Assembly (NCBI RefSeq): GCF_002113885.1
Contig: NW_018407435.1
Span: 1,382,958 to 1,446,957 of the forward strand
From: Mizuhopecten yessoensis
Lineage: Eukaryota
Direction of reading: 5' to 3'
DNA length: 64,000 bases
Shown: positions 5,001 to 57,535 of the stretch, one piece after another
Layout: every line of letters begins with the position of its first letter
Numbering within the stretch: the first letter of the stretch is position 1
Notes under the pieces: model-generated
The model's input: only the letters and a program-made list of their open reading frames with translations
Told to the model about the DNA's origin: nothing
Databases searched by the model: none
Translations under genes and position numbers: made by a program

Positions 5001-8000
5001 GACATTGTGGTGGCTTTTGATCTAAACTTCAAAATGATGATATTATTTTGTATTTCGCTTTGTATCAATTGAAGTAAAACATTTCAAAAGTTAAAATGTC
5101 TGCCTTGTGGCCATTGATATTACAATTTTACAATAAAAAACAAGTGGGAAGTCTCAATAGTAATTTCCACCTGGTCTGGAGTGACATTTTACTCTTTAAC
5201 ATCGAACATTGACAACTTAAATCAAAGCAGGGGAAGAAGTCTTTGTTACTGTAACAGGAGAGGAAAAATGCATGGCCAGGCCAGGGTTCTAATCCGGGAC
5301 TCTCTGAACTCTAGATTGATGATCTGGCCAACTAGCAGCTACATTTTTCTCCCTATCGGTTTTAAAAAAAAAATGCCTAATGCTTATTAATTAATACCCA
5401 AGGAGAGTTTAAATATGAAGTTTGAGAAAAACCATCCAGTTCTTCTCGAAAAAAAGTGATAACAAGAACTGGACACACCACTGACCATGGCCCAAAGGTG
5501 TTTTGAGTGACCATGGTGGTCGAAATACTGGAGGTGGCCTTACAACAACCACCCCCCTCCTCCTGCCCAAATAGGTCGGGACACCAAATCATCATCCATA
5601 ATCTATCTATCTATATATTAAATATCAACTAGGAAGTTCTAGGTATCAGTGTGGAATACCAGTGAGATTAGACTAGTGAGGTTTAGAGTCACCAACTGAT
5701 TATATATATAGCGACATACTGAATGACTTCTACATAAATTAAATTGTATACAGGTACCGTAAAAACCCATATAATTTGCACACCTATGTAATTTGCACAG
5801 GTACTTTTTGAGGCAGAAAATCCCCAAAAAAACTTGTACTTGAATATTTTGCGTACCAAAATAATTCAAGTTCCGAAAATCGAAATTACATGGGGTTTTA
5901 CAATAACAAAAAAATATTTGTCAACATAAAATCAGTGAAAACATTACTGTTGAATATTTCACATAAAATCACATGCAACAAGAGGCCCAGAGGGCCTGTA
6001 TCGCTCACCTGGATATCTAAGCAATCATGGCAAAATATTCTCCAAATGAGATCCAAGGGAATATGCCAGACCTCAAGGCCAATCCTTGTAGCATATCTGT
6101 ATTTGATTTTTTATGCCCAGCAATTTTATGTATGGTTATGGGGTGGGGATCTCAACTGTTTCCAAGCTGTGACTCAGAAACTAGGTCCCTAGGGTTGTGG
6201 CCAGACCCCAGGATAAATTCTAATATCATGACTGCATTTGTCTCTTTTTGCCCAGCATTTGTATATATAGTTTTGGGGTGGGGATCTCAACCGTTTCAAA
6301 GTTATGACCCAGGGGTTATGTCTGCAAGGGTGGGGCAGACCCTTGGGTCAATTCTAATACCATGACTGCATTCGTCTCTTTATGCCCAACAATTGTATAT
6401 ATAGTTTTGGGGTGGGGATCTTAACCGTTTCAAAGTTATGACCCAGGGGTTAAGTCTCCAAGGGTGGGGCCAGACCCTAGGGCCATCCTGGAAGCAAATG
6501 TGCATTCCTCTCTTTATACTCAGCAATTGTATATATGGTTATATGGTGGGGATCTCAACCATTTCCAAGTAATATTTTTTTTCGGCCCTACCCCTTAGCC
6601 CGGGGGGTCAGCCCCACCATTTGTACAATTTTGAATCCCTGCCTCCCATGAATGCTTCCGACCAAATATGATCAATATCCATGGTATAGTTTTACGGAAG
6701 AAGTCGTTTAGAGCAATATAGCCAAATTGCCCCCTTTTGGCCCAGCCCTCAGCCCCCTGGGGGGTCAGCCCCACCATTTGTACAATTTTGAATCCCCACC
6801 ACCTAGGGATGCTTCCAGTCAAATATGGTTCATATTTATCTCTTAGTTCCAGATAGGAGGTCGCTTAAAGCAATATAGCTAAATAACCCTTTTTGGCCCT
6901 GCCCCTCAACCCCATGGGGGTCAGCCCCACCATTTGTACAATTTTGAATCCCTGCCTCCCATGAATGCTTTTGATTAAATATGATTGATATCCAGTGCAT
7001 AGTTCTATAGAAGAAGTCGTTTGTAGCAATATAGTCAAAATGCCCCCTTTTGGCCGGCCCCTCAGCCCCCTGGGGGGTCAGCCCAACCATTTGTACAATT
7101 TTGAATCCACACCACCTAGGGATGCTTCCAATTAAATATGGTTGATATCCATCTCTTAGTTCCAGAGAACATCTCTTAGTTCCAGAGAAGATGTCGCTTA
7201 AAGCAATATAGCCAAATTGCCCCCTTATTGCCCTGTCCCTCAGCCCCCTGGGGGGACAGCCCCATCATTTGTACAATTTTGAATCCCCACCACCTAGGAA
7301 TGCTTCCAGTTTAAAGAAATTGTTGACGGACGGACGACGGACGCCACGGTATGGCATAAGCTCACCTTGGTACTTTGGACCCGGTGAGCTAATAATGCTA
7401 CACTTGAAAAGTTAAGTGTCTAATATATCAAATACCCCCAATTTTTACCACTTCAAATGTTCAACTTCTATAAATTTCTTCCAATGTAGAAGAGAGATGA
7501 CCCATCTATGATGACCAATCTATAATAAATCAATTCTAAACTGTGTAACACTATGAGCTTACCACACGATACCTACAATTAGCTCTCCTAGCAGAATATT
7601 ATTGATTTTCAGATTAAAAATAACGTAGAAAACATATACCAGCCAGTGCTTTGCTTAGTAAATATTACCAAACAGTAAATCTGTGCCACATCCGTGTTGT
7701 GAATTAATCGATTATTTGGACAGATCATGTGTGAGTTGCCTTAGACGTCATGACATACAGTAACATTTTTACATGGTTTGAGAATTCTAAATAAAACCTT
7801 TATAACACCCACAGGTAACCCTCAAATATAAGTAAAACCCTTGGGTGCAGACTACAGTCACAGTCACCTGATCATGATGACACAGGTAACTGTAAATATA
7901 TTTGAAGCCACCACTAATGACTGTTACCCAGGAACACTAACTGTTGTTTTAATATTTGTAACAGATTTGCATTCATACAAGCATGAAACTTCAAAAAATC

Positions 8001-11000: not shown

Positions 11001-14000
11001 CAAAAAATCTTATAGGATATATATATTATATATAGACACACAAATCTAGGGTAGCTATATATAGATAGCTAGATATATATAGCTACCCTAAAGTTACCGG
11101 AACAAATTAGACTGCAGACATCACTTTATTTTCACAGCCATAAGTCATGAAATGTAGGATGGTCAGTATTTACATGATGAAACATCGCAAGCTACAGAGT
11201 GGGAGTCGGGTAGACACCTTGTCTTGTACACAAACTTTTAAAAAAGTATGTGATAATTTATTAGCCCCTTTCTTTGATTAGCAATCCTGGCCTATACTTT
11301 AATTATTACTTACAAACCCTACATATCTAGGGATCTAAGTTTTAAATCAAACACTTCTCCTATATGCTTAAACAAATTAAAACATATTTCTGTTGTTATT
11401 AGCTGTACAGTATTATCGTAACATTAGCAAAAACGTTGCTGTAGCTACCTGGTCACGTCACAGGTCACATGACAGACGTCAATGACGAACGTTCAAACAT
11501 AATGTTTCCTTAATCATGAAAATGTGGGGTGTTTTAGAATTTAACATTGTAAATATAACCTACCCTTAATTTTGTTTAGGATATAAATGAAGCACAGTTG
11601 CACAAGACATCTTTCACTAACCATGTTTCGGTACAATATGGTCACAGTTAAATGGGTCTACACATACAAGCAACATTTAGACAACAACAACTGTCTTAAT
11701 ACAGCAACAACCTTGTCGCCAGATAAAATCTTCGAAATATTAAAAACAGTAAACAACATCATAAGATGTGTTGTTCATATAATGACTACAATTAAAAAAC
11801 ATTCACCCAAATTTCAGTTTGATTTGTGAAAAATATGGCAAGTTATGAAAAATGCAAATATTACAATTGGATGTGTGCATGTTACATGCAGGTACATGTA
11901 CTATGGTATGCTTCACATTCAATGAAGTGTCTTCAAACCCTACCCCTCCAAACAACAAGAGTAAGCAACATCAGCAGATATTGTATTTGTATTACTGTAT
12001 ATACTGGACCTATACAAATTCCAGTTCAATATCACGTATGTGAAAAAATAACCAAGTTACAATTTATAGTGAATTGATTTTTTAAGGTTGACAAATGTCA
12101 CAGGTATATATGTGTATGTGTACACTGATCAAAATGCATCTGTTAATTTACATCCTTTTAACAGCTATGATCATTTAAGGGCGAGCTGGTTTGCTGGTGG
12201 AGGAAAGCCGGAACACCCAGAAAACAACACCGACCTGTGGTCAGTACCTGCCGACTGCCCCATGTACATAGGCCACAAAACCAGGACCCAGTGGTGGAGG
12301 GCTAGTGATCATAGACGGTCGATGCCTTAACCACTCGTCCACCACAGCCCCGCCATCTTCAGACTGCATTATATTACTCAAAATAATCCTTAAAGTGAGT
12401 GGAACAACGAAGTTAGTTTATTTACCCAGTACACTATATAAAATATATAATGTCACACAAACATATAATGGACCCTTAGTAGAACAACGCCCATGTCTGT
12501 AGGGTCTGATAACATTCTACACACACGATACATTTAAAAAAAGTCTAAGTGTGTTCACCAATGTACATGTGAAGTCCTATGTACACACATGATACAGCAT
12601 AAAGTTTAGTTCAAGCACACGTGCAAGGTGAAAATTGCACCGATCCTAACTCATAACACAGGGGTAAAGGACAATGTCAAAAAAGTGTCGAGGAATGTTT
12701 ACATTCATCTTTTAGGTTTCTGGAGGACGCACCTAGCGGTATACAAAAGCCCTCTTATGATAAAGCAAAGCAAATACCCAAAGGAGATAAATAACTTGAA
12801 TTGTGAACCCAGGTTTCCATAATTAACTGTGTAGCGGACATCCACAACCAGTTAGCTCAATTGGTAAAGCGTCCGTCTAGAGTTCGGAGGGTCACTGGTT
12901 CAAAACCCAACTATTGTTATAAGGGGATACCAAAACTTGGGTTGTAAAAAGTGGTCTCTTTGGGGGCAAAGTCTTAGAAAAAGGAGGGAGGAATGTAACA
13001 GAACTGGACGGGGTTGATCATCTACCGCCACATAGCTAAATTGGTATAGAGCGTCCATCTATGGATGGTCCTGGGTTTGAACCCTGGTCTAGCAGTGCAT
13101 TTTATCTCTCTTGATATAATTGACACTTGTGCTGACTGATTTCGGCCTGCTAGGCAGGTGGATGTCAGAGCACAACTACGTACATTCAATATAGTTACTA
13201 CATTGAATAAGGAAGTAGATATGGAGAAAAGATAAAGCAAAATTCTGATTGGTGCATACATAATAAAGTATGAGATAATAATACATGAGTGATCATTATA
13301 TTAAAGGCTTGAAGTAAATATAAGTATCAATTGGTACATTTCAGGGGTAAGGTGAAAATATTCAAAGTTTTGAGGAAGGAAGAAATTGATAAATCTGGAT
13401 CCATGTTTTACCTGTAGGAGAAGGCTAATAGTAATCCTGAACATTATAGCTAATGTAAGACGGTGATTATATGGTTATGATTCCTATATACACTAAGTCA
13501 CAATATCAGTCAAAATCAATATCTGTGAAAAATTGAAAAGCAGCTGGAAAATACTGAAAGTTCCAAATTGTACAGTTAAGATGAATCCCAAAGATGGGAA
13601 AGGTCCGGGATACCCTTGCATCAGAAAGTCTGTAGGAAGTAATAGTACGAGTCCTGACAATTCAAATGTTTGTATGAGGATTTAGGCTAAAGGATGGCCC
13701 TGCAGAGTATATCTAGTGCTTTAATCAAGAAGGCAAGTAGTACATATGTACGTCCTCCATGCTGTAGATTGATGAATAGGATAAGTTTATTCATGTTTGG
13801 CAATAGTAGTTTTCAATAACAGTGATAGTGGTTATACCACTAGAAAGTAGATGTATAAGTAGTTTCATACTACTGTAGTGAGATTCTATACATGTATGTA
13901 GCTGAACTGGCCATGGGCTGGGCCATTTTCCAGCCACCAGTATAAAGCTCAATCGGTAGAGCGTCTGTCTAGAGTTTGGAGGGTCCCGGGTTTTAACCTG

Positions 14001-47184: not shown

Positions 47185-48744
47185 TCACGCACTGTAATAC
47201 TGTAGACGTTTGACTTCGTCACCATTCACCGCCCAGAGGACATGGTTCTTGTCCAGGCCAATTGCCTGTGCACTTAGCTCGTCAGTGAACACCGTCCTGA
47301 TGAACTCCCCACCAGAACTGACGAGAAGGACGCTGTGATTGTTACAGTCGGCAATGAGAAGATTACCAGCAATGTCAAAGGTCACATCCCAGGGGTCAAA
47401 TACAGCTCCTGCTGCTGGTTGGCCATCTCCTTTGTATCGGAACAACTCTCCAAACTCTTTGTCCATGACAAGAACTTGCAATTTACTATTATCGTCATAG
47501 CTCTGCCTTTCTACCACAGCCACGTTCTGTGTCAGCCGACATTCTGCTATTTTCTGTGGCAAACGAACCATGGATTGTCCAGGTGTCTGCGTTTTCGTAC
47601 TAAGGAGATTTTTTCCTTGCTGGGAGAATTTGGTCACCCTTTGCGACATTCCTACCAGGATTTGATTCCCTATGGTAACACACAGGCATATGGGCTTGTT
47701 CTTGCAGTGGAATCGCAGATTGGGCGTCCCCTGTGTATACTCCATGATGCTTGAATCGGCGTCAGAGCACACCCAAATGTTCCTTGTTCTGGGTGATATG
47801 CTGATATCTGTGATTCTCACGGTGAACTTGAACTGCCTCCGTACAATACCTTTCTTGTTGAGCAGTTCCAGAATGTCCGCATATGAAATCCAAATTTCGT
47901 CGCTACCGTTGGGACATATCTTATTGCCTATTCGTTTTGTGTGAAATTTGCCCATGATATTGGTTTGGGATAGGAGCGTGTACTTCGAGGCAGGTCGCTT
48001 TATAGCTGACGCCCCTGACTTTGGTCGTGCAGACGTTGGCTCCTGCACTGGTGGTGGTAGCTGCGCTTTAGACTCTGCTTCATCGGTAGACGACGGGTCG
48101 TTGGGGACAAGAGTCCCTAACGCTTGTTCTAGATAACAGCGGTAGTTTGTCGGTGCTTCAAAGACTGCAGTATTCAAACTAGGGCTTTCAGGTAGGTTCA
48201 AAGCGAGGCTTCGGAATGTCTGTCCAGTGTCATATAATGCAAGTACAGATGTGTCTTGAAGCTGTGTTTTGCAGTCGTGAAGTTGTTTAATGAGTCCCTC
48301 GTGACTGTCTTCTAGACGTTTCTTGTAGTCTGTCATTAGGCGGATGTTGTCTTCCTTTATATTTCGATACTGCGACAAAGATTCAGCGATCAAAACGTCA
48401 ACTTCCTGCTTCAGCTTGATCCCTTGTTCTTGAACCTTTGTCTTGAGCGTGTCAAAGTACGTCGAAGTTTCCGCCATTTGTTTTTCTATTGAGCAAATTT
48501 CTTCTTTGATATTGGGCAGTTTGGTATTTTCAACTTCATCGATAAATTCGATCATTTCTAATTTCTGCTTTTCGGCTATATCATTTACCTCAGTCAACTC
48601 GTGTCCCTTGTGACGAGTAGCAACACATTTCATACACGCAAGTTCACTGCAATTATCACACAAGAACTCTACGATTTTCCCTTTATGATGAATGCACGTG
48701 CTCTGTCCTTTCTTGCGAACAGGTACTTGAACTGAAGCGGCCAT
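47185..48744 (-). CDS. RING-less TRIM-like protein (B-box2, coiled coil, NHL-type beta-propeller), copy 1, 519 aa
   Basis: CIHH...FLCDNCSELACMKCVATRHKGH B-box, a heptad-rich helical region, and FDPWDVTFDIAGNLLIADCNNHSVLLV NHL repeat. Intronless CDS. Confidence 0.92.
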   Translation of the reverse strand: MAASVQVPVRKKGQSTCIHHKGKIVEFLCDNCSELACMKCVATRHKGHELTEVNDIAEKQKLEMIEFIDEVENTKLPNIKEEICSIEKQMAETSTYFDTLKTKVQEQGIKLKQEVDVLIAESLSQYRNIKEDNIRLMTDYKKRLEDSHEGLIKQLHDCKTQLQDTSVLALYDTGQTFRSLALNLPESPSLNTAVFEAPTNYRCYLEQALGTLVPNDPSSTDEAESKAQLPPPVQEPTSARPKSGASAIKRPASKYTLLSQTNIMGKFHTKRIGNKICPNGSDEIWISYADILELLNKKGIVRRQFKFTVRITDISISPRTRNIWVCSDADSSIMEYTQGTPNLRFHCKNKPICLCVTIGNQILVGMSQRVTKFSQQGKNLLSTKTQTPGQSMVRLPQKIAECRLTQNVAVVERQSYDDNSKLQVLVMDKEFGELFRYKGDGQPAAGAVFDPWDVTFDIAGNLLIADCNNHSVLLVSSGGEFIRTVFTDELSAQAIGLDKNHVLWAVNGDEVKRLQYYSA

Positions 48745-49350: not shown

Positions 49351-50619
49351 TAGCTATATCAAGGGGGGTGGGGGGTACTCAAAATACGAAAAGACTCACT
49401 CAGTTGAAATGGTTATGTATTTTATCACACCGCCATTTTTAGCCCATTTTCATAAATATTAAGCCGTCAGAATGAATATTTTGCGATTTCCCTTCAATTA
49501 AATGTATTGGCGATGTTTAAATGTTACGTCATAGTTAAAAGCATATTTCATTTTTTCCTTCATTCTGCATATGTTTTGGAACACTTTAGACATTGTTGTT
49601 TTTTATTTTCATTTTTTAACCTTAATTTTAAGTACCATTGAAAAGTCCGATATTGACAAAATTGCCAAATGATGCAAACAACGTTTTCAAAAAAGGTGCC
49701 TCTTTTCCCGTATTTCTAGTGTCCATATATGCAACAAGTTGGGCTGATTCAGTTGATGGTAGCCACGTAGCTGAAACCTATTCTAGCACTCATTTCATAA
49801 AATACTAGTTAATCTATATATTATCTTTATGTTTGTAAAGGTATAAAGGATGTCATAGGAACGTTGCGCGTTGCACTGTATCCTACAGATGTTTGGGAAC
49901 ACGTTAAACATTAATTTTCATTATTTTGATCGTTATTACTGGTGATTGGTTTCTATTGGACAAAATGTCTCTTTGGCGCATTAAATGTTTGGTTTGTTCG
50001 GCTTTCTGATTGGTCCAATAGCTGCTTCCTACTTTGTATTTCTCAGAGACGTTATGACGTCAAAAGTTGGATGAACTGCTGGTGAATTTCTTAACGTGTA
50101 TTTCTTTTCAAGAACAGATCTATCCTTGATATCTTGTTCGTGAATACTTGAATTCATGATAATGAAACCTTTTTATACATCACTGCTTTTTGGTTAAGAT
50201 ACTGATAAGATCTTATTTGACCTACGTGACTTATTTTAAGCAGTATTTAATGAGAAATAAGCCGCTGTACAAATACAAGTGAAAAATAACGAGCTTCGAG
50301 GTTATGTTGACTTATTGTAAATATGTAAGATAGTTAATATAGAAGTCCAAGGATATTTAACATGGAAAAACATATATATATTTAAAAAAAACTGACTTCA
50401 TTATTTCTAAATCCTTTTCGCGAGATTTTATGTTGTGTTTATAATTTTTTATTATATAATATAAGGCTTCTGCAGTGCAATAAAGGGGTGCAATAAAATT
50501 GATATTGAACGTGTGCAATAAAGATGCAAATGAGCGCGCGACACCTCGGGAACTAGGTCGTATTCCTACGCACTACTACTACTACTACTACTACTACTAT
50601 AGTATAGGCTTACTACAAC

Positions 50620-52119
50620 ATGGCTGACGTAAACATTGGGGATTCTGTTCGAATTGGCGGCAAAGGTAGGGGCACAGTACAAGAACTTGTTCCAATGGGA
50701 TTTGCAACAGTTTTAATCGAGGGAAGTGATATTGAGATTGACTTGCCAGGTGATCGGTTAGAGCCAATACCCCAGACTATGACTCAGTCGTCCTCGCTAC
50801 CACAAAAGCAGACGACACCCAACCAAACTCAAAGGTTTGTTCCGGTCCAACAAACGGAAATTGGGTCATTCATTGAACAACAATCAAATAAGAACACTCT
50901 ACTGAAAACGTGGAATGACATGAAAGTATTGAAAGCCTTTTTCGAAACTCCAGAAATCAACGAATCCCGAAGTATTCAAAACATACCCCCTCCCGAATTA
51001 TCTCCGTTGCTTTCCCAATTTTTCATGAGTGTCCGAAAAGTGGACGGTTCTGAATATGAACCAAACAGTCTCAGATCTATGATGTCAAGCTTTGATCGCC
51101 AGCTACGCCGATTTAATTATGGTCATGCTATTATTACTAGTCCCCTGTTTGCCCAGGTTAGAGAAGTGTTGAAAAGTAAACAAAAACAGTTAAAACGCGA
51201 TGGAAAAGGTAACCTTGACAACCGTAGTGATGCTATCAGCGACGAGGAGATCGACGTTTTGTGGAGAAAAGGTCAATTTGGAACTCAAAACCCTGACGCT
51301 ATTTTACAGACACTTTGGTTTTTCAATACAGTACATTTTGGTTTACGGGGATCAGCGGAGCATCGCGATATGTGCTGGGGGGACGTTACACTACAAAACC
51401 ACACTGACGGACATGAATATCTAGAGTTTACGGAAAGACAAACAAAAACCAGGACAGGGGAGAACACCCGTGATGTACGCAAAGTAAAACCAAAATTGTG
51501 GGCAAACACTGAAAATCCCGAAAGGTGTCCTGTTCATGTTTACAAATGCTATGCAGATATGAGACCTACGACTTACTGTAAAGGATCAGATCCATTTTAT
51601 ATAGCTACTACAACAAAAAGCTCACCTGGAAGTCATGAGACTTGGTTCAAGCGCCAACCCGTTGGTATCAACAAGCTAAAATCCATGATGCAACGTGCCA
51701 TAAAGGGAGCAGGAATCCAAACTGACAAACACTTGTCAAATCACAGTGCGAGGAAATATCTTGTCCAGAAATTGAACGATAATAACATCCCCGCTAACCA
51801 TATAATGCAAATTTCTGGTCACCGAAACATTTCTTCTATTAATAATTATTCACACATCAACACGAATCAACACAAAGAAATCTCCAAAATACTGCACGGA
51901 AATCCAACAGCACCTGAGACCGGATGCAACACAACATCACTGACACAACAATCAATGGCGTGTAACCAGTCAACTTCCTCTGTTGTCAGGGTCCAGGGCG
52001 GTTTCCAAAGTATCTTTTCAGGTGCTGTCACAGGAGGAAACATACAAGTTCATGTTTACCAAGGACCTCCTCTGAAAAAACGCGCCCGTGTTATAGAAAG
52101 TGACAGTGATTCTCAGTAG
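50620..52119 (+). CDS. Tyrosine recombinase with a DUF3504 (ZMYM/KIAA1958/QRICH1-like) domain, Crypton transposase, 499 aa
   Basis: VRKVDGSEYEPNSL is a DUF3504-type motif. The catalytic set is intact: HFGLR (R), TKTR (K), NHSAR (HxxR), SGHR (H), NNYS (Y). C-terminal NLS PPLKKRAR. Intronless. Confidence 0.92.
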   Translation: MADVNIGDSVRIGGKGRGTVQELVPMGFATVLIEGSDIEIDLPGDRLEPIPQTMTQSSSLPQKQTTPNQTQRFVPVQQTEIGSFIEQQSNKNTLLKTWNDMKVLKAFFETPEINESRSIQNIPPPELSPLLSQFFMSVRKVDGSEYEPNSLRSMMSSFDRQLRRFNYGHAIITSPLFAQVREVLKSKQKQLKRDGKGNLDNRSDAISDEEIDVLWRKGQFGTQNPDAILQTLWFFNTVHFGLRGSAEHRDMCWGDVTLQNHTDGHEYLEFTERQTKTRTGENTRDVRKVKPKLWANTENPERCPVHVYKCYADMRPTTYCKGSDPFYIATTTKSSPGSHETWFKRQPVGINKLKSMMQRAIKGAGIQTDKHLSNHSARKYLVQKLNDNNIPANHIMQISGHRNISSINNYSHINTNQHKEISKILHGNPTAPETGCNTTSLTQQSMACNQSTSSVVRVQGGFQSIFSGAVTGGNIQVHVYQGPPLKKRARVIESDSDSQ

Positions 52120-52481
52120 GCCTAATATCCAACACATGTGTTTTCGGTTTCCGACGACCTTCACAGTGCGCGCGCTCTTACACTGTTCATGACGTCACCG
52201 ATGAAAAAAAACAGTTTTTTTCCGAAGCGAAAAAAAAGAAGTCATATTTTGTAAACTTTTATTATTTCAATTGTTATCACAATTAAAATGATCGTTAAAA
52301 GTAAAACTGTTGGCCATTTATTATTCTGATAAAATTCTGCGGACTACTTTTGTTAGCGGAACATGCTCTCAAATTAGTATATGTGATGCGTCCTTTCTCG
52401 TCGTCATTGCATATAGAGACGTTAGTATTGAAACCACTTATGTAGGTAGGTTTCTCGAATTATATAATAAATAGAATCTAA

Positions 52482-52610
52482 CACTCGTGTTCATGTTATA
52501 TTGAATTTATTGAACTCGTATATTAATTTCATATGAAACTCGCCAAAGGCTCGTTTCATATGAAATTAATATACTCGTTCAATAAATTCAATATAACATG
52601 AACACGAGTG
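52482..52610. repeat. Long hairpin/cruciform: 63-bp arms, AAA loop and two 2x2 TC/TC internal mismatches
   Basis: Arms were paired by hand around the centre at 52546. The only mismatches are where CTCG occurs in the same orientation in both arms. Confidence 0.92.
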
Positions 52611-54007
52611 CTAGATCCTCTATATATTTTACCTAAACACCGGAATTAGCAGTTATATGACATACCTTTACAGTAGAAATCTAGACCGTTTTTTGGTGTC
52701 TAAATGAATAATGTTCACGTTTAATAGGCTGATAATCTATTCATTTTAATTTTAGTAAGTTAAATCCTGAATAAAGACGAAGATGTAAGCATTATTTTTC
52801 TAGTCCAGGTATATGCAATAAAGCAGGTTACAAAATCATCAATTAACAATATATATAATGTAATGCAAGAAAACCTAATTGGGGATTTCCACTAAACACG
52901 AAGTAGGATTTCTCTACTTTCTAATTTCATATTATTACTGCTATTTTCATTTCGAGGGAAATCCACATTTGTAATTGCCCTAATAATATCTTTCAGAAGA
53001 TGACTACTAGATTTCACGTAGTCATTTTCGCTACGAAATGATAATATAATGTTTTTGCCAGTTTCATGTCTTCGTTATAAATATGAGATAGATTAGCCGT
53101 TCTACTTTCGTTTTAAGTTAACATACCACAACGTATGATTATGTGCAGAAAAATCAGTTTTTATGCTGAAATAAACACCAATTTCTCTTACACACATAAT
53201 ATCCCAGTCATACATCTATCTATGATAGCTACATGTACTAACATTTCATGTAATTTCAAAATATTTCAGAATACATTGGTATGCTAAATACCTGAAAGCA
53301 TTATCATATATATGTACATACATAACACACACAAAGATGTCTGACATGAAGTGTGTAATTCAGTCAGTATATTTGTTGAATGTGAACACGATCAATCAAA
53401 TCTTACCTGATAGCATTAAGTATTCCTTTTCAAGAAACAGAGCTGAGTATACATACAAGCGTGACTTTGACCCTGGACTTTGTCATACTGCTACGGTGTA
53501 AACAACGACTGATACGCCCCTTCTCGACTGATACGCCCCTGCACGACTGTTGATAATGACATAATACATGCTATCGATTCTCGGAACTGCTAACAACGGG
53601 CATACGGAAGCGGGGTGGTAACATAGCCCTAACGGAGACACGTGGTTTAATCTTTGTTTAACTTCTCTAGAATTCTCCTTCTTATCATTCTTATTATTTT
53701 TATGTTATTACTGTAGTTTACTTTTGCCATTGAAGAAGGCCAGGATGTCGAAATATTCGGAACTAGGGCGACATTTATTATATTTTTATCATTTTGCCCA
53801 TCGGAAATCATCTGTTGTTTATTATGTAAATTGATTCAATTCACTTTATAAAAATGTCTGTAGTTGATTGATATTAATTAATATTATAAGAAGTTGAGAT
53901 GTTTGCGCATTTATGACATATTTTCCAAACCGAAGTAATTAAAAAAAACTTTTAGGTAAAAAAGCAATTAAAATTCTATCACGTGCCTACAATGTCATAC
54001 ATAAAAT

Positions 54008-55969: not shown

Positions 55970-57535
55970 TCACGCACTAAGGTACTGTAGACGTTTGACT
56001 ACGTCACCGAACACCGCCCATAAGACATGGTTTTTGTTCAGACAGATTGCCTGGGTATTCCGCTCGTCCGTGAACACCGTCCTGATGAACTCCCCAACAG
56101 AACTGACGAGAAGGACACTGTGATTGTTACAGTCAGCAATGAGAAGGTTCCCAACATTGTCAAAGGTCACATCCCAAGGATCAAATTCAGCTTTTGATTC
56201 CGGTTGGTATTCCAGCATGTCTCCTTTAAATCGGAACAACTCTTCGAAGTTTTTGTCAATGACAATAACTTGCATTTCTATATTCTCTTCATGGCTCTGC
56301 CTTTCAACCACAGCAACGTTCTGTGTCAGCCGACATTCTGCTATTTTCTGTGGCAAACGAACCAATGATTGCCGAGGCTTTGACGTTTTCGTGCTCATGA
56401 GCGGTTTACCATGTTGTGAGAATCTGACCACTTTTTCTGACATCCCCACCAAGATATGATTCTCTATGGTAACACACAGACATAGAGGCTTGCTATTGCA
56501 GTAGAAGCTGACACTTGGCGCCCACTGTGTACACTCCATGATGCTTGAATCGGCGTCAGAGCACACCCAAATGTTCCTTGTTCTGGGTGATATGCTGATA
56601 TCTGTGATTCTCACGGTGAACTTGAACTGCCTCCGAACCGTACCTTTTTTGTTCAACAGCTCGAGAACGTCCCAGTATGAAATCCAAATTTCGTCATTGT
56701 CAACTGGACATATCCTATTGCCAATTCTTTTTGTATAAAGTTTACCAAGAGTGACGGTTTGGGGCAGAAGCTTGTACTTCACGACCGATCTTCTGGTAGT
56801 TCTCGCTTTTGACATCGATCGTTCCGATGTTGACGCCTGGGTAGATGGCTGAAGCTGTACTGTCGACTCTGTCTGACCATCAGATCGGTCATTTGTGACC
56901 AACGTTCCTAATGCTTGCTCCAGGTAACAGCGATAGTGTGAAGGTGGTTCAAATGAAGTGGTATTCAAATTTGGGTAATCGGGTAATTCCAGAGGGAAAC
57001 TTTCGAACACATGCTCAGCGTCATATAGTTCAATATCAGACGCCTCTTGAAGCTGTGTCTTGCATTCGTGTATCTCTTTATCGAGTCCTTTGTGGCTGTC
57101 TTTCAGACATTGCTTGTAGTCGGTGAGTAGCCGGATGTTATCCTCTCTCCGTTTTTGACAATGTGACACAGATTCGGCGATCATACCGTCAATTTCCTGT
57201 TTTAGTTCCTCCCCATGTTCTTGAACTGTTGTTCCTAGCTTATCAAAGTACTCCGAAGTATTCTCTATTTGCTGTTCAATTGCCCCTATCTTTTCTGTAA
57301 TGTTTTGCAGTTTATTATTTTCAAGTTCGTCGATAAACTTGACCATTTTTGATTTCTTTTGGTTTACGATATCACCAAGTTCGGTCAACGCATGCGCCCT
57401 ATGTCGAGTAGCAACACATTTCATACAGGCGAGTTCGCTGCAATTTTCACAAACGAATTCTAAGTTATTGCCTGTATGATACATGCACGTGATCTGTCCT
57501 TTCTTGCGAGCAGCAGTTTGACCTGCAGTAGCCAT
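55970..57535 (-). CDS. RING-less TRIM-like protein (B-box2, coiled coil, NHL-type propeller), copy 2, 521 aa
   Basis: CMYH...FVCENCSELACMKCVATRHRAH B-box and the same NHL repeat. Paralogue of 47185-48744. A probable 5' UTR intron has its acceptor near 57558 and donor near 58200. Confidence 0.92.
   Translation of the reverse strand: MATAGQTAARKKGQITCMYHTGNNLEFVCENCSELACMKCVATRHRAHALTELGDIVNQKKSKMVKFIDELENNKLQNITEKIGAIEQQIENTSEYFDKLGTTVQEHGEELKQEIDGMIAESVSHCQKRREDNIRLLTDYKQCLKDSHKGLDKEIHECKTQLQEASDIELYDAEHVFESFPLELPDYPNLNTTSFEPPSHYRCYLEQALGTLVTNDRSDGQTESTVQLQPSTQASTSERSMSKARTTRRSVVKYKLLPQTVTLGKLYTKRIGNRICPVDNDEIWISYWDVLELLNKKGTVRRQFKFTVRITDISISPRTRNIWVCSDADSSIMECTQWAPSVSFYCNSKPLCLCVTIENHILVGMSEKVVRFSQHGKPLMSTKTSKPRQSLVRLPQKIAECRLTQNVAVVERQSHEENIEMQVIVIDKNFEELFRFKGDMLEYQPESKAEFDPWDVTFDNVGNLLIADCNNHSVLLVSSVGEFIRTVFTDERNTQAICLNKNHVLWAVFGDVVKRLQYLSA

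Follow-up and report, generated by a model that had tools for sequence, protein, structure and literature searches.

A mismatched palindrome forms the 3′ end of a recently active scallop Crypton and is a candidate folded recombination site

No class of eukaryotic DNA transposons is less well understood than the Cryptons: the model of their mechanism dates back 20 years, the ends of animal Cryptons have been called undefinable, and the animal regulator genes ZMYM2/3/4, QRICH1, KIAA1958 and KCTD1 arose from them. How such an element marks its ends is the question raised by a locus of the scallop Mizuhopecten yessoensis, situated in a stretch of 64,000 nucleotides (part of NEDP02004108.1, assembly GCA_002113885.2) that is called the window here and whose positions are used below. 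For this locus, a first-pass annotation had described an intact tyrosine recombinase gene between a 13-bp inverted pair and a shorter inner pair, together with a hairpin outside the right repeat whose arms are perfect save for two identical 2x2 mismatches, and had proposed the hairpin as a structured, strand-specific substrate for recombination or replication. All these features, namely the open reading frame (ORF), both inverted pairs, the hairpin arms and the two mismatches, are present where they had been placed. In this study, we show that 50448-52627 is an intact copy of a young, multi-copy and recently active transposon of the CryptonA type, and we ask what the palindrome at its 3′ end could be for.

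Besides the window copy, the scallop assembly contains four further copies of the element (L001-L004), and the resulting five loci are 99.3-99.8% identical over aligned columns, as judged by BLAST and alignments. L001-L003 carry ORFs of 502 aa; L004 is internally deleted, with both ends kept. Similarity among the copies begins at 50448 (TTTATTATATAAT...) and stops at 52627 (...GATCCTCTATATAT), with unrelated flanks on either side, which delimits a mobile unit of 2180 bp on the plus strand (50448..52627) whose ends read TTTATT... and ...TATATAT. Because of these limits, the mobile unit includes the hairpin, the final paired base of which lies a few nucleotides inside the right boundary. Furthermore, the hairpins of the five copies are alike to the same degree as the ORFs and were therefore copied with the element, rather than being older miniature inverted-repeat transposable elements (MITEs) that served as its targets. 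The hairpin is almost certainly an integral, conserved end of the element: it does lie outside the right 13-bp repeat, as annotated, but is not external to the element, being the 3′ terminal module inside the mobile unit. Likewise, the 13-bp pair does not flank the element as its two ends, as had been assumed, since its left copy is the left terminus and its right copy is internal. This pair is the only end-related repeat, long terminal repeats are absent, and no target-site duplication was found at any of the five scallop insertions.

Could the hairpin nevertheless be an independent foldback MITE that merely lies beside the Crypton or represents its preferred target? Such an element would be suggested by read data, which were available at the contig level only, where rare forms are dropped and depth does not equal copy number. 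In three DNA runs from different studies, all carrying the window insertion, contig depth amounted to 790, 509 and 255 at the left end, to 624, ~400-570 and 74 over the ORF body and to ~6-16 in the flanks. In all three, contigs of the hairpin region were deeper than those of the ORF body, by several fold, and many contigs diverge upstream of 52450. However, these additional contigs resemble 3′ ends that have diverged in related subfamilies, and the depth pattern fits a large number of copies together with many carriers of the end modules that are non-autonomous or related. Moreover, all five copies stop at one and the same base after the hairpin, the hairpins of L001-L004 share one deletion, the same architecture occurs in other hosts with family-specific inverted repeats, and ~150 kb of scallop DNA contained no solo hairpin. 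A MITE with a target-site duplication of its own, as the annotation had considered, is at odds with the right boundary that hairpin and element share in all five copies, and we hold this explanation to be extremely unlikely.

The recombinase ORF of 499 aa occupies 50620..52119 on the plus strand (open-reading-frame list) and is the sole gene of the element: no other long ORF exists in 50448-52627, and no reverse transcriptase, DDE transposase or Rep/helicase of the Helitron kind was found among the ORFs of this region. Pfam matches comprise DUF3504 (1.5e-33), Phage_integrase (3.7e-10) and, weakly, QRICH1. Across 18 aligned homologues, the catalytic residues R243, H375, R378, H401 and Y410 show no variation and K276 shows hardly any, so that the full R-K-HxxR-H-Y complement (with H375-x-x-R378) is present in the scallop ORF and the earlier description of an intact recombinase is borne out. 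The closest database protein (99%) is likewise from Mizuhopecten yessoensis and annotated as "zinc finger MYM-type protein 2-like", and a PDB sequence search returned QRICH1 as the sole relative. An AlphaFold model of mediocre quality (pLDDT 61), used solely for the Cre-like fold and the N-terminal beta-barrel, matched Cre best, followed by QRICH1, Tn1549 Int, XerH/XerA and IntI, the last at rank 40. Judged by its sequence and the model, the product is thus a Cre-like tyrosine recombinase of the CryptonA type, composed of a small N-terminal beta-barrel, a DUF3504/QRICH1-like core-binding domain and a catalytic domain. The barrel (residues 1-50, window 50620-50770) is conserved, five-stranded and SH3/KOW-like with a pLDDT of ~80; it is absent from Cre and, going by the model, may serve as an extra DNA- or chromatin-binding domain. 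The single intronless recombinase ORF with a DUF3504-type domain, the lack of reverse transcriptase, long terminal repeats and target duplication, and the multiple copies in unrelated flanks are all shared with CryptonA elements as described (Goodwin et al., 2003; Kojima and Jurka, 2011, PMC3212892).

Inverted-repeat detection placed the arms of the hairpin at 52467-52544 and 52548-52625. The terminal palindrome itself extends over 52472..52622 (plus strand), with the left arm reaching to 52544, an AAA loop at 52545-52547, the right arm starting at 52548 and a CC bulge at 52617-18. Within the inner 63 nt of each arm, pairing is perfect save for the two 2x2 loops, both of which read TC/TC on the plus strand (52516-17 / 52575-76 and 52540-41 / 52551-52) and GA/GA on the bottom strand. 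When both strands were folded as DNA, as the annotation had recommended, each formed a single long stem, at -63.5 kcal/mol for the top strand (z = -21.7 against shuffles) and -65.8 kcal/mol for the bottom strand (z = -19.7).

The ancestral form of this structure emerges from relatives whose recombinases are 51-57% identical in protein. These are a copy in Mercenaria mercenaria (L006), six copies in the ENA assembly ERZ25071447 (L007-L012, here the L007 family), a Tara metagenome scaffold and a Logan contig (L013/L014) and a JGI contig (L016), and they have a palindrome of 146-172 nt a few hundred nucleotides past the stop codon. Drawn arm on arm, each shows three TC/TC loops, and the distances between them, ~31 and 24 nt, are shared. 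As the three loops occur in every relative, the ancestral scallop state also had three bubbles. The relatives' tip reads CTCG(C/G)C-N-G(C/G)CTCG and their right end (C/T)CTCTAT followed by A/T; since the tip is common to them, that of the window, CTCGCC-AAA-GGCTCG with the third bubble (52539..52553, plus strand), is ancestral.

Measured against this ancestor, the scallop copies have each lost something. At the outer position, the TC of the left arm (52485..52486, plus strand) faces GA at 52606-52607 in the window and is paired there; L001-L004 and four other families have TC/TC. The middle bubble (52516..52517, plus strand, with its partner at 52575-52576) is shared by all five scallop copies with L007, L013 and L016. 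The tip bubble is kept in the window and lost from the four other copies, in which a deletion between TTTCATATGAAA repeats (52527-38, 52554-65) has removed 27 nt of the tip, and it is probably lost from most genome copies, too. In the three DNA runs, contigs have 9 nt inserted at 50708 together with the base variants typical of 502-aa copies, and the window copy is therefore a minority variant.

To what extent pairing is maintained beyond single loci was assessed with a seven-family alignment, in which RNAalifold predicted 66 pairs; compensatory double changes were seen in 45 of these. Watson-Crick cells amounted to 87%, compared with 28-35% when partners were slid by 1-3 columns, and none of 500 shuffles matched the observed values. 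Palindromes were detected by self reverse-complement BLAST, and since the families are related, the counts that follow do not represent independent events. Among 29 palindromes beside Crypton ORFs, TC/TC was the commonest internal loop (20 times in 12 loci), with GA/GA occurring twice among the 2x2 loops. The tip motif, matched once in the window with zero matches expected, was found in 18 of 94 loci, nearly always on the ORF strand, and YCTNTAY stands at the right edge of 15 of the 29 palindromes and, mirrored, at the left edge of none. Of 36 metagenome loci in which the protein match is followed by 900 nt or more, 17 have a downstream palindrome of 90-250 nt, usually 420-530 nt past the end of the match. 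The proposal that the mismatches are not random decay is hence upheld by families that are 51-57% identical and show compensatory changes in the stem, yet have TC/TC on the ORF strand at three matching positions. The hairpin stays with the recombinase in the five scallop copies as well as in other hosts, an outcome that answers the refuting conditions named in the annotation. In some distant lineages (24-28% identity), a hairpin with the tip motif was observed upstream of the ORF or on both sides (L087:113-248, 2259-2448; L092:1080-1130), and L087 has the GA version on the ORF strand, so that position and polarity of the hairpin vary among Cryptons.

A structure on the sense strand, ~350 nt past the stop codon and directly after the AATAAA of the right repeat, might also act at the RNA level, as a 3′-untranslated element of the recombinase transcript involved in termination, stability or small RNAs. 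An RNA-library run did yield contigs over the ORF, which are no proof of transcription; these contigs end at 52479, as do the DNA contigs. A structure formed in RNA of one strand is expected to show an excess of G.T over A.C mismatches, whereas the single mismatches in the 29 palindromes comprise 9 G.T and 10 A.C. Furthermore, the sense strand contains destabilising U.C mismatches, and the bottom strand is the more stable fold in 12 of 13 hairpins. Together with the pairing between left terminus and right repeat described below, which is meaningful at the DNA level only, these observations render an RNA element improbable.

The inverted pair consists of the left terminus TTTATTATATAAT (IR-L, 50448..50460, plus strand) and its reverse complement ATTATATAATAAA (IR-R, 52459..52471, plus strand), which abuts the palindrome. 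The two are 100% complementary over 13 bp, and an equally long match arose in 1 of 1000 shuffles. In four families (scallop, Mercenaria, L007 and L016), a site 124-172 nt upstream of the ATG recurs in exact reverse complement in the 13-15 nt immediately to the left of the palindrome, a match equalled by at most 1 of 1000 shuffles. For the scallop and L007 families, mapping identifies this upstream site as the left terminus; element ends outside these two rest on single copies. The left-terminus sequences differ among families, being TTTATTATATAAT in scallop, TTTTATCACATAAAC in Mercenaria, ATTTATTACATAAC in L007 and TTATAACATAACC in L016. Joining 52627 to 50448 extends the palindrome by the inverted pair and leaves a TA-rich stretch of 5-10 nt (TATAT in scallop) unpaired on one arm at the joint. 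This stretch belongs to the right-end motif CCTCTAT plus TATAT (52617..52627, plus strand), the presumed crossover region beside the joining point. The inner inverted pair GAGCGCGCG / CGCGCGCTC (50532-50540 / 52169-52177, plus strand), which the first-pass annotation had listed beside the 13-bp pair, is attributable to chance: 46 of 300 shuffles gave an equal match, and three other families have no counterpart.

Taken as a whole, the observations are best explained if the ~160-nt bubbled palindrome is a cis-acting, folded recombination site of the element, which we consider probable. The terminal module would then be an attP-like site at which the encoded recombinase carries out excision or circularisation as well as integration. 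With both ends joined, as they would be in a circular intermediate of the kind proposed for Cryptons, the left 13 nt would pair with the 13 nt to the left of the palindrome and create one long palindrome, with the joining point beside the 5-10 nt TA-rich unpaired stretch (CCTCTAT-TATAT) on one arm only. The folded palindrome, as a cruciform or a single-strand hairpin, could act as a splint that lines up both ends in a manner similar to the internal complementary region (ICR) found in DIRS elements, and the three TC/TC mismatches (GA/GA on the opposite strand, in Py-GA-Pu contexts) might confer polarity or strand identity on an otherwise symmetric structure. We infer folding in vivo, reading of the fold by the recombinase and the places of strand cutting. 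A folded site is favoured because complementarity is kept along the whole arms despite sequence drift, because the mismatches keep their places and their strand although repair occurs, as at the outer site of the window, because both termini are complementary to adjacent internal bases and because the presumed crossover falls in the sole asymmetric stretch. The more specific proposal, that a large clade of animal Cryptons recombines via an extruded palindrome with the GA/GA (TC/TC) mismatches setting strand or direction, is put forward tentatively, as a possibility that we would not yet call probable.

Short sequence motifs are also shared between both ends. Three direct GTGCAATAAA repeats lie at 50475-84, 50488-97 and 50513-22 (plus strand), with related motifs in both hairpin arms and in the inverted repeats, and are candidate protein-binding sites. 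More generally, IR-L, IR-R and both hairpin arms contain members of a 10-nt family, (G/A)T(G/T/A)(C/T)AATAAA, of which 2-3 direct copies lie at the 5′ end (window 50475-50522, 52497-52515 and 52577-52595; L006:3877-3924 and 6235-6316; L007:3878-3927 and 5820-5956). In Mercenaria, the copy in the hairpin matches the first of the 5′ copies exactly. Going by their sequence and arrangement, members of this family are candidate arm-type binding sites.

These motifs lead to a different view of the palindrome, namely as an unfolded array of symmetric double-stranded sites around the crossover that are bound by the recombinase, its N-terminal domain or a host factor. The array would resemble a complex attP or the ends of Tn916/Tn1549, and the TC dinucleotides would be marks read in duplex. 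Duplex DNA is the substrate of all the closest folds, Cre, Tn1549 Int and Xer, and loss of the tip does not stop the element from spreading. However, the arm positions between the motifs stay complementary while changing (45 of 66 pairs with double changes), which duplex sites do not need, and the flanks of the middle TC differ between the arms, so that its two sites would be different duplex sequences. We therefore consider a duplex array rather unlikely, although it is the main rival of the folded site.

Several findings weigh against the folded site. Motifs of the form xTxYAATAAA, present three times at the 5′ end, in IR-L/IR-R and twice per arm in several families, fit a duplex array equally well. 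The window copy has no outer bubble, L001-L004 and apparently most read copies have no 27-nt tip, and as tip-less copies have spread, the most deeply conserved part of the structure is dispensable for spread in scallop. A few distant loci show the opposite (GA) orientation, and no significant IR-L/IR-R pair was found in more distant families. Arm complementarity could also persist by intramolecular conversion without selection. Finally, the five scallop insertions have neither a consistent target motif nor a flanking direct repeat, and no circle junction and no empty-site joint at 50447/52628 was found in four runs, which is weak evidence because their contigs lose rare forms.

The annotation had proposed a replication substrate as an alternative to a recombination site, and a large near-perfect palindrome with a conserved centre beside a tyrosine recombinase could indeed serve as an origin, as the terminus of rolling-hairpin replication or, with the recombinase acting in a protelomerase-like manner, as a site for hairpin-telomere resolution. 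Active Cryptons of Chlamydomonas gain copy number (PMC9977147), and in the scallop runs the body is 8- to 80-fold deeper than the flanks, again as depth rather than copy number. Against this stands the orientation of the mismatches: copying through a hairpin would render the arms exactly complementary within one cycle and flip-flop both orientations, whereas TC/TC prevails over its inverse by 20 to 2. Four copies have spread without the palindrome centre, and no hairpin-ended or circular contigs, circularly assembled ones included, were found, which together leave a replication module very improbable. The ratio of body to flank contig depth differs among the runs, with ~8x in X10 and 40-80x in X1 and X9, which could reflect differences in copy number between animals or extrachromosomal copies.

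Folded recombination substrates are known from bacteria, where integron attC sites (recombined by IntI) and the attP(+) site of CTX phage (recombined by XerCD) are imperfect palindromes of ~60-150 nt, with unpaired features that give strand identity and a crossover near the base of the stem. These bacterial systems rely on extrahelical single bases plus R/L boxes, or on dif half-sites. The scallop element shares with them the combination of a tyrosine recombinase and an imperfect palindrome with conserved unpaired features, but differs in its tandem 2x2 TC/TC (GA/GA) mismatches and its eukaryotic, Cre-like enzyme. It does not belong to the integrons, given the 40th rank of IntI among the fold matches and 2x2 loops in place of extrahelical bases (the R/L-box consensus was compared by eye), and the likeness is to be taken as a functional analogy only. 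Should recombination via a folded substrate prove true, it would be the first eukaryotic counterpart of hairpin recombination at integron attC or in CTX phage, and a mechanistic link with the DIRS retroelements and their ICR. The ICR is complementary to the joined termini and essential in DIRS-1 (PMC7192593), and the four Crypton families likewise have an internal segment complementary to their joined ends. DIRS elements, however, have a reverse transcriptase, long inverted repeats and a cDNA intermediate, whereas the scallop element encodes a recombinase only and its complementary segment lies within a long hairpin. Helitrons and IS200/IS605/IS91 differ in having HUH/Rep nucleases and short hairpins (~16-20 nt); the scallop element has no Rep gene and lacks the 5′ TC and 3′ CTRR ends of Helitrons.

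Among Cryptons themselves, animal members have been described without terminal repeats (Kojima and Jurka, 2011, PMC3212892), and a 2026 paper calls the terminal repeats of CryptonA variable or poorly conserved and its ends poorly defined (PMC13465315); neither publication uses the words "hairpin" or "palindrome". In comparison with CryptonA as described, the scallop clade has exact ends, a terminal/subterminal inverted pair of 13-15 nt and a conserved, mismatched 3′ palindrome of ~160 nt. Full-text literature searches, with Repbase and Dfam outside their scope, revealed no description of a Crypton hairpin, and a Crypton with a defined, structured terminal module common to a clade appears to be new. 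The active CryptonF-1_cRei of Chlamydomonas ends in CACCG and targets CAYCG, a resemblance of terminal pentamer and target that is consistent with site-specific recombination of one terminus (PMC9977147). It belongs to another Crypton group for which no hairpin was reported, and in contrast to its pentamer the scallop end is TA-rich, with a clear target, (TA)n, only in the L007 family.

The module of inverted pair, 160-nt palindrome with three TC/TC and one-sided CCTCTAT/(TA)n offers a signature for annotating complete and non-autonomous Cryptons and represents the first concrete handle on how these elements mark their ends and move. It also supplies defined substrates and mutants for asking whether a eukaryotic tyrosine recombinase reads DNA structure, and a small, single-protein, structure-guided recombinase with a compact site would be of possible interest as a tool.

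With regard to targets, copies of the L007 family have (TA)n on both sides or stand beside ACATA/TACA, a setting that fits recombination of a TA-rich end with a TA-rich target, along the lines proposed for Cryptons. In one locus (L009:5546-7603), (TA)n separates copies in tail-to-tail arrangement and nothing but AT separates the left termini of two head-to-head copies; next to them, a deletion derivative of ~1 kb has kept both ends (L009:6598-7603). Element ends seem to attract further insertions in this cluster. In scallop, the L002 copy is inserted in an AT-rich satellite with the 24-bp unit GCTGTC(A/T)ATATAACATACATTAAG (L002:9440-9840, 11991-12090) and the L003 copy in one with a looser CAGAAAT...CTAACCTAGA repeat (L003:9540-9837, 11991-12290), which may reflect a preference for TATA-rich repeats. 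The two satellites were considered as pseudo-empty sites and rejected: the interrupted 24-bp unit closes uncleanly, and neither crossover nor duplication can be fixed from it.

The surroundings of the element and its 5′ leader show some further features. A called gene that encodes ubiquitin and TerD domains spans the Mercenaria copy (L006:2276-8723), which presumably sits in an intron and whose recombinase frame is interrupted in that assembly. In the window, the element is flanked by two B-box/NHL (TRIM-like) genes on the minus strand that are members of a tandem cluster (47185-48744 and 55970-57535). Its leader contains an (ACT)n microsatellite whose length differs among the copies (50564..50607, plus strand) and an octamer-like box, GATGCAAATGAG (50523..50534, plus strand), which is also found in the Mercenaria copy and is probably a promoter element.

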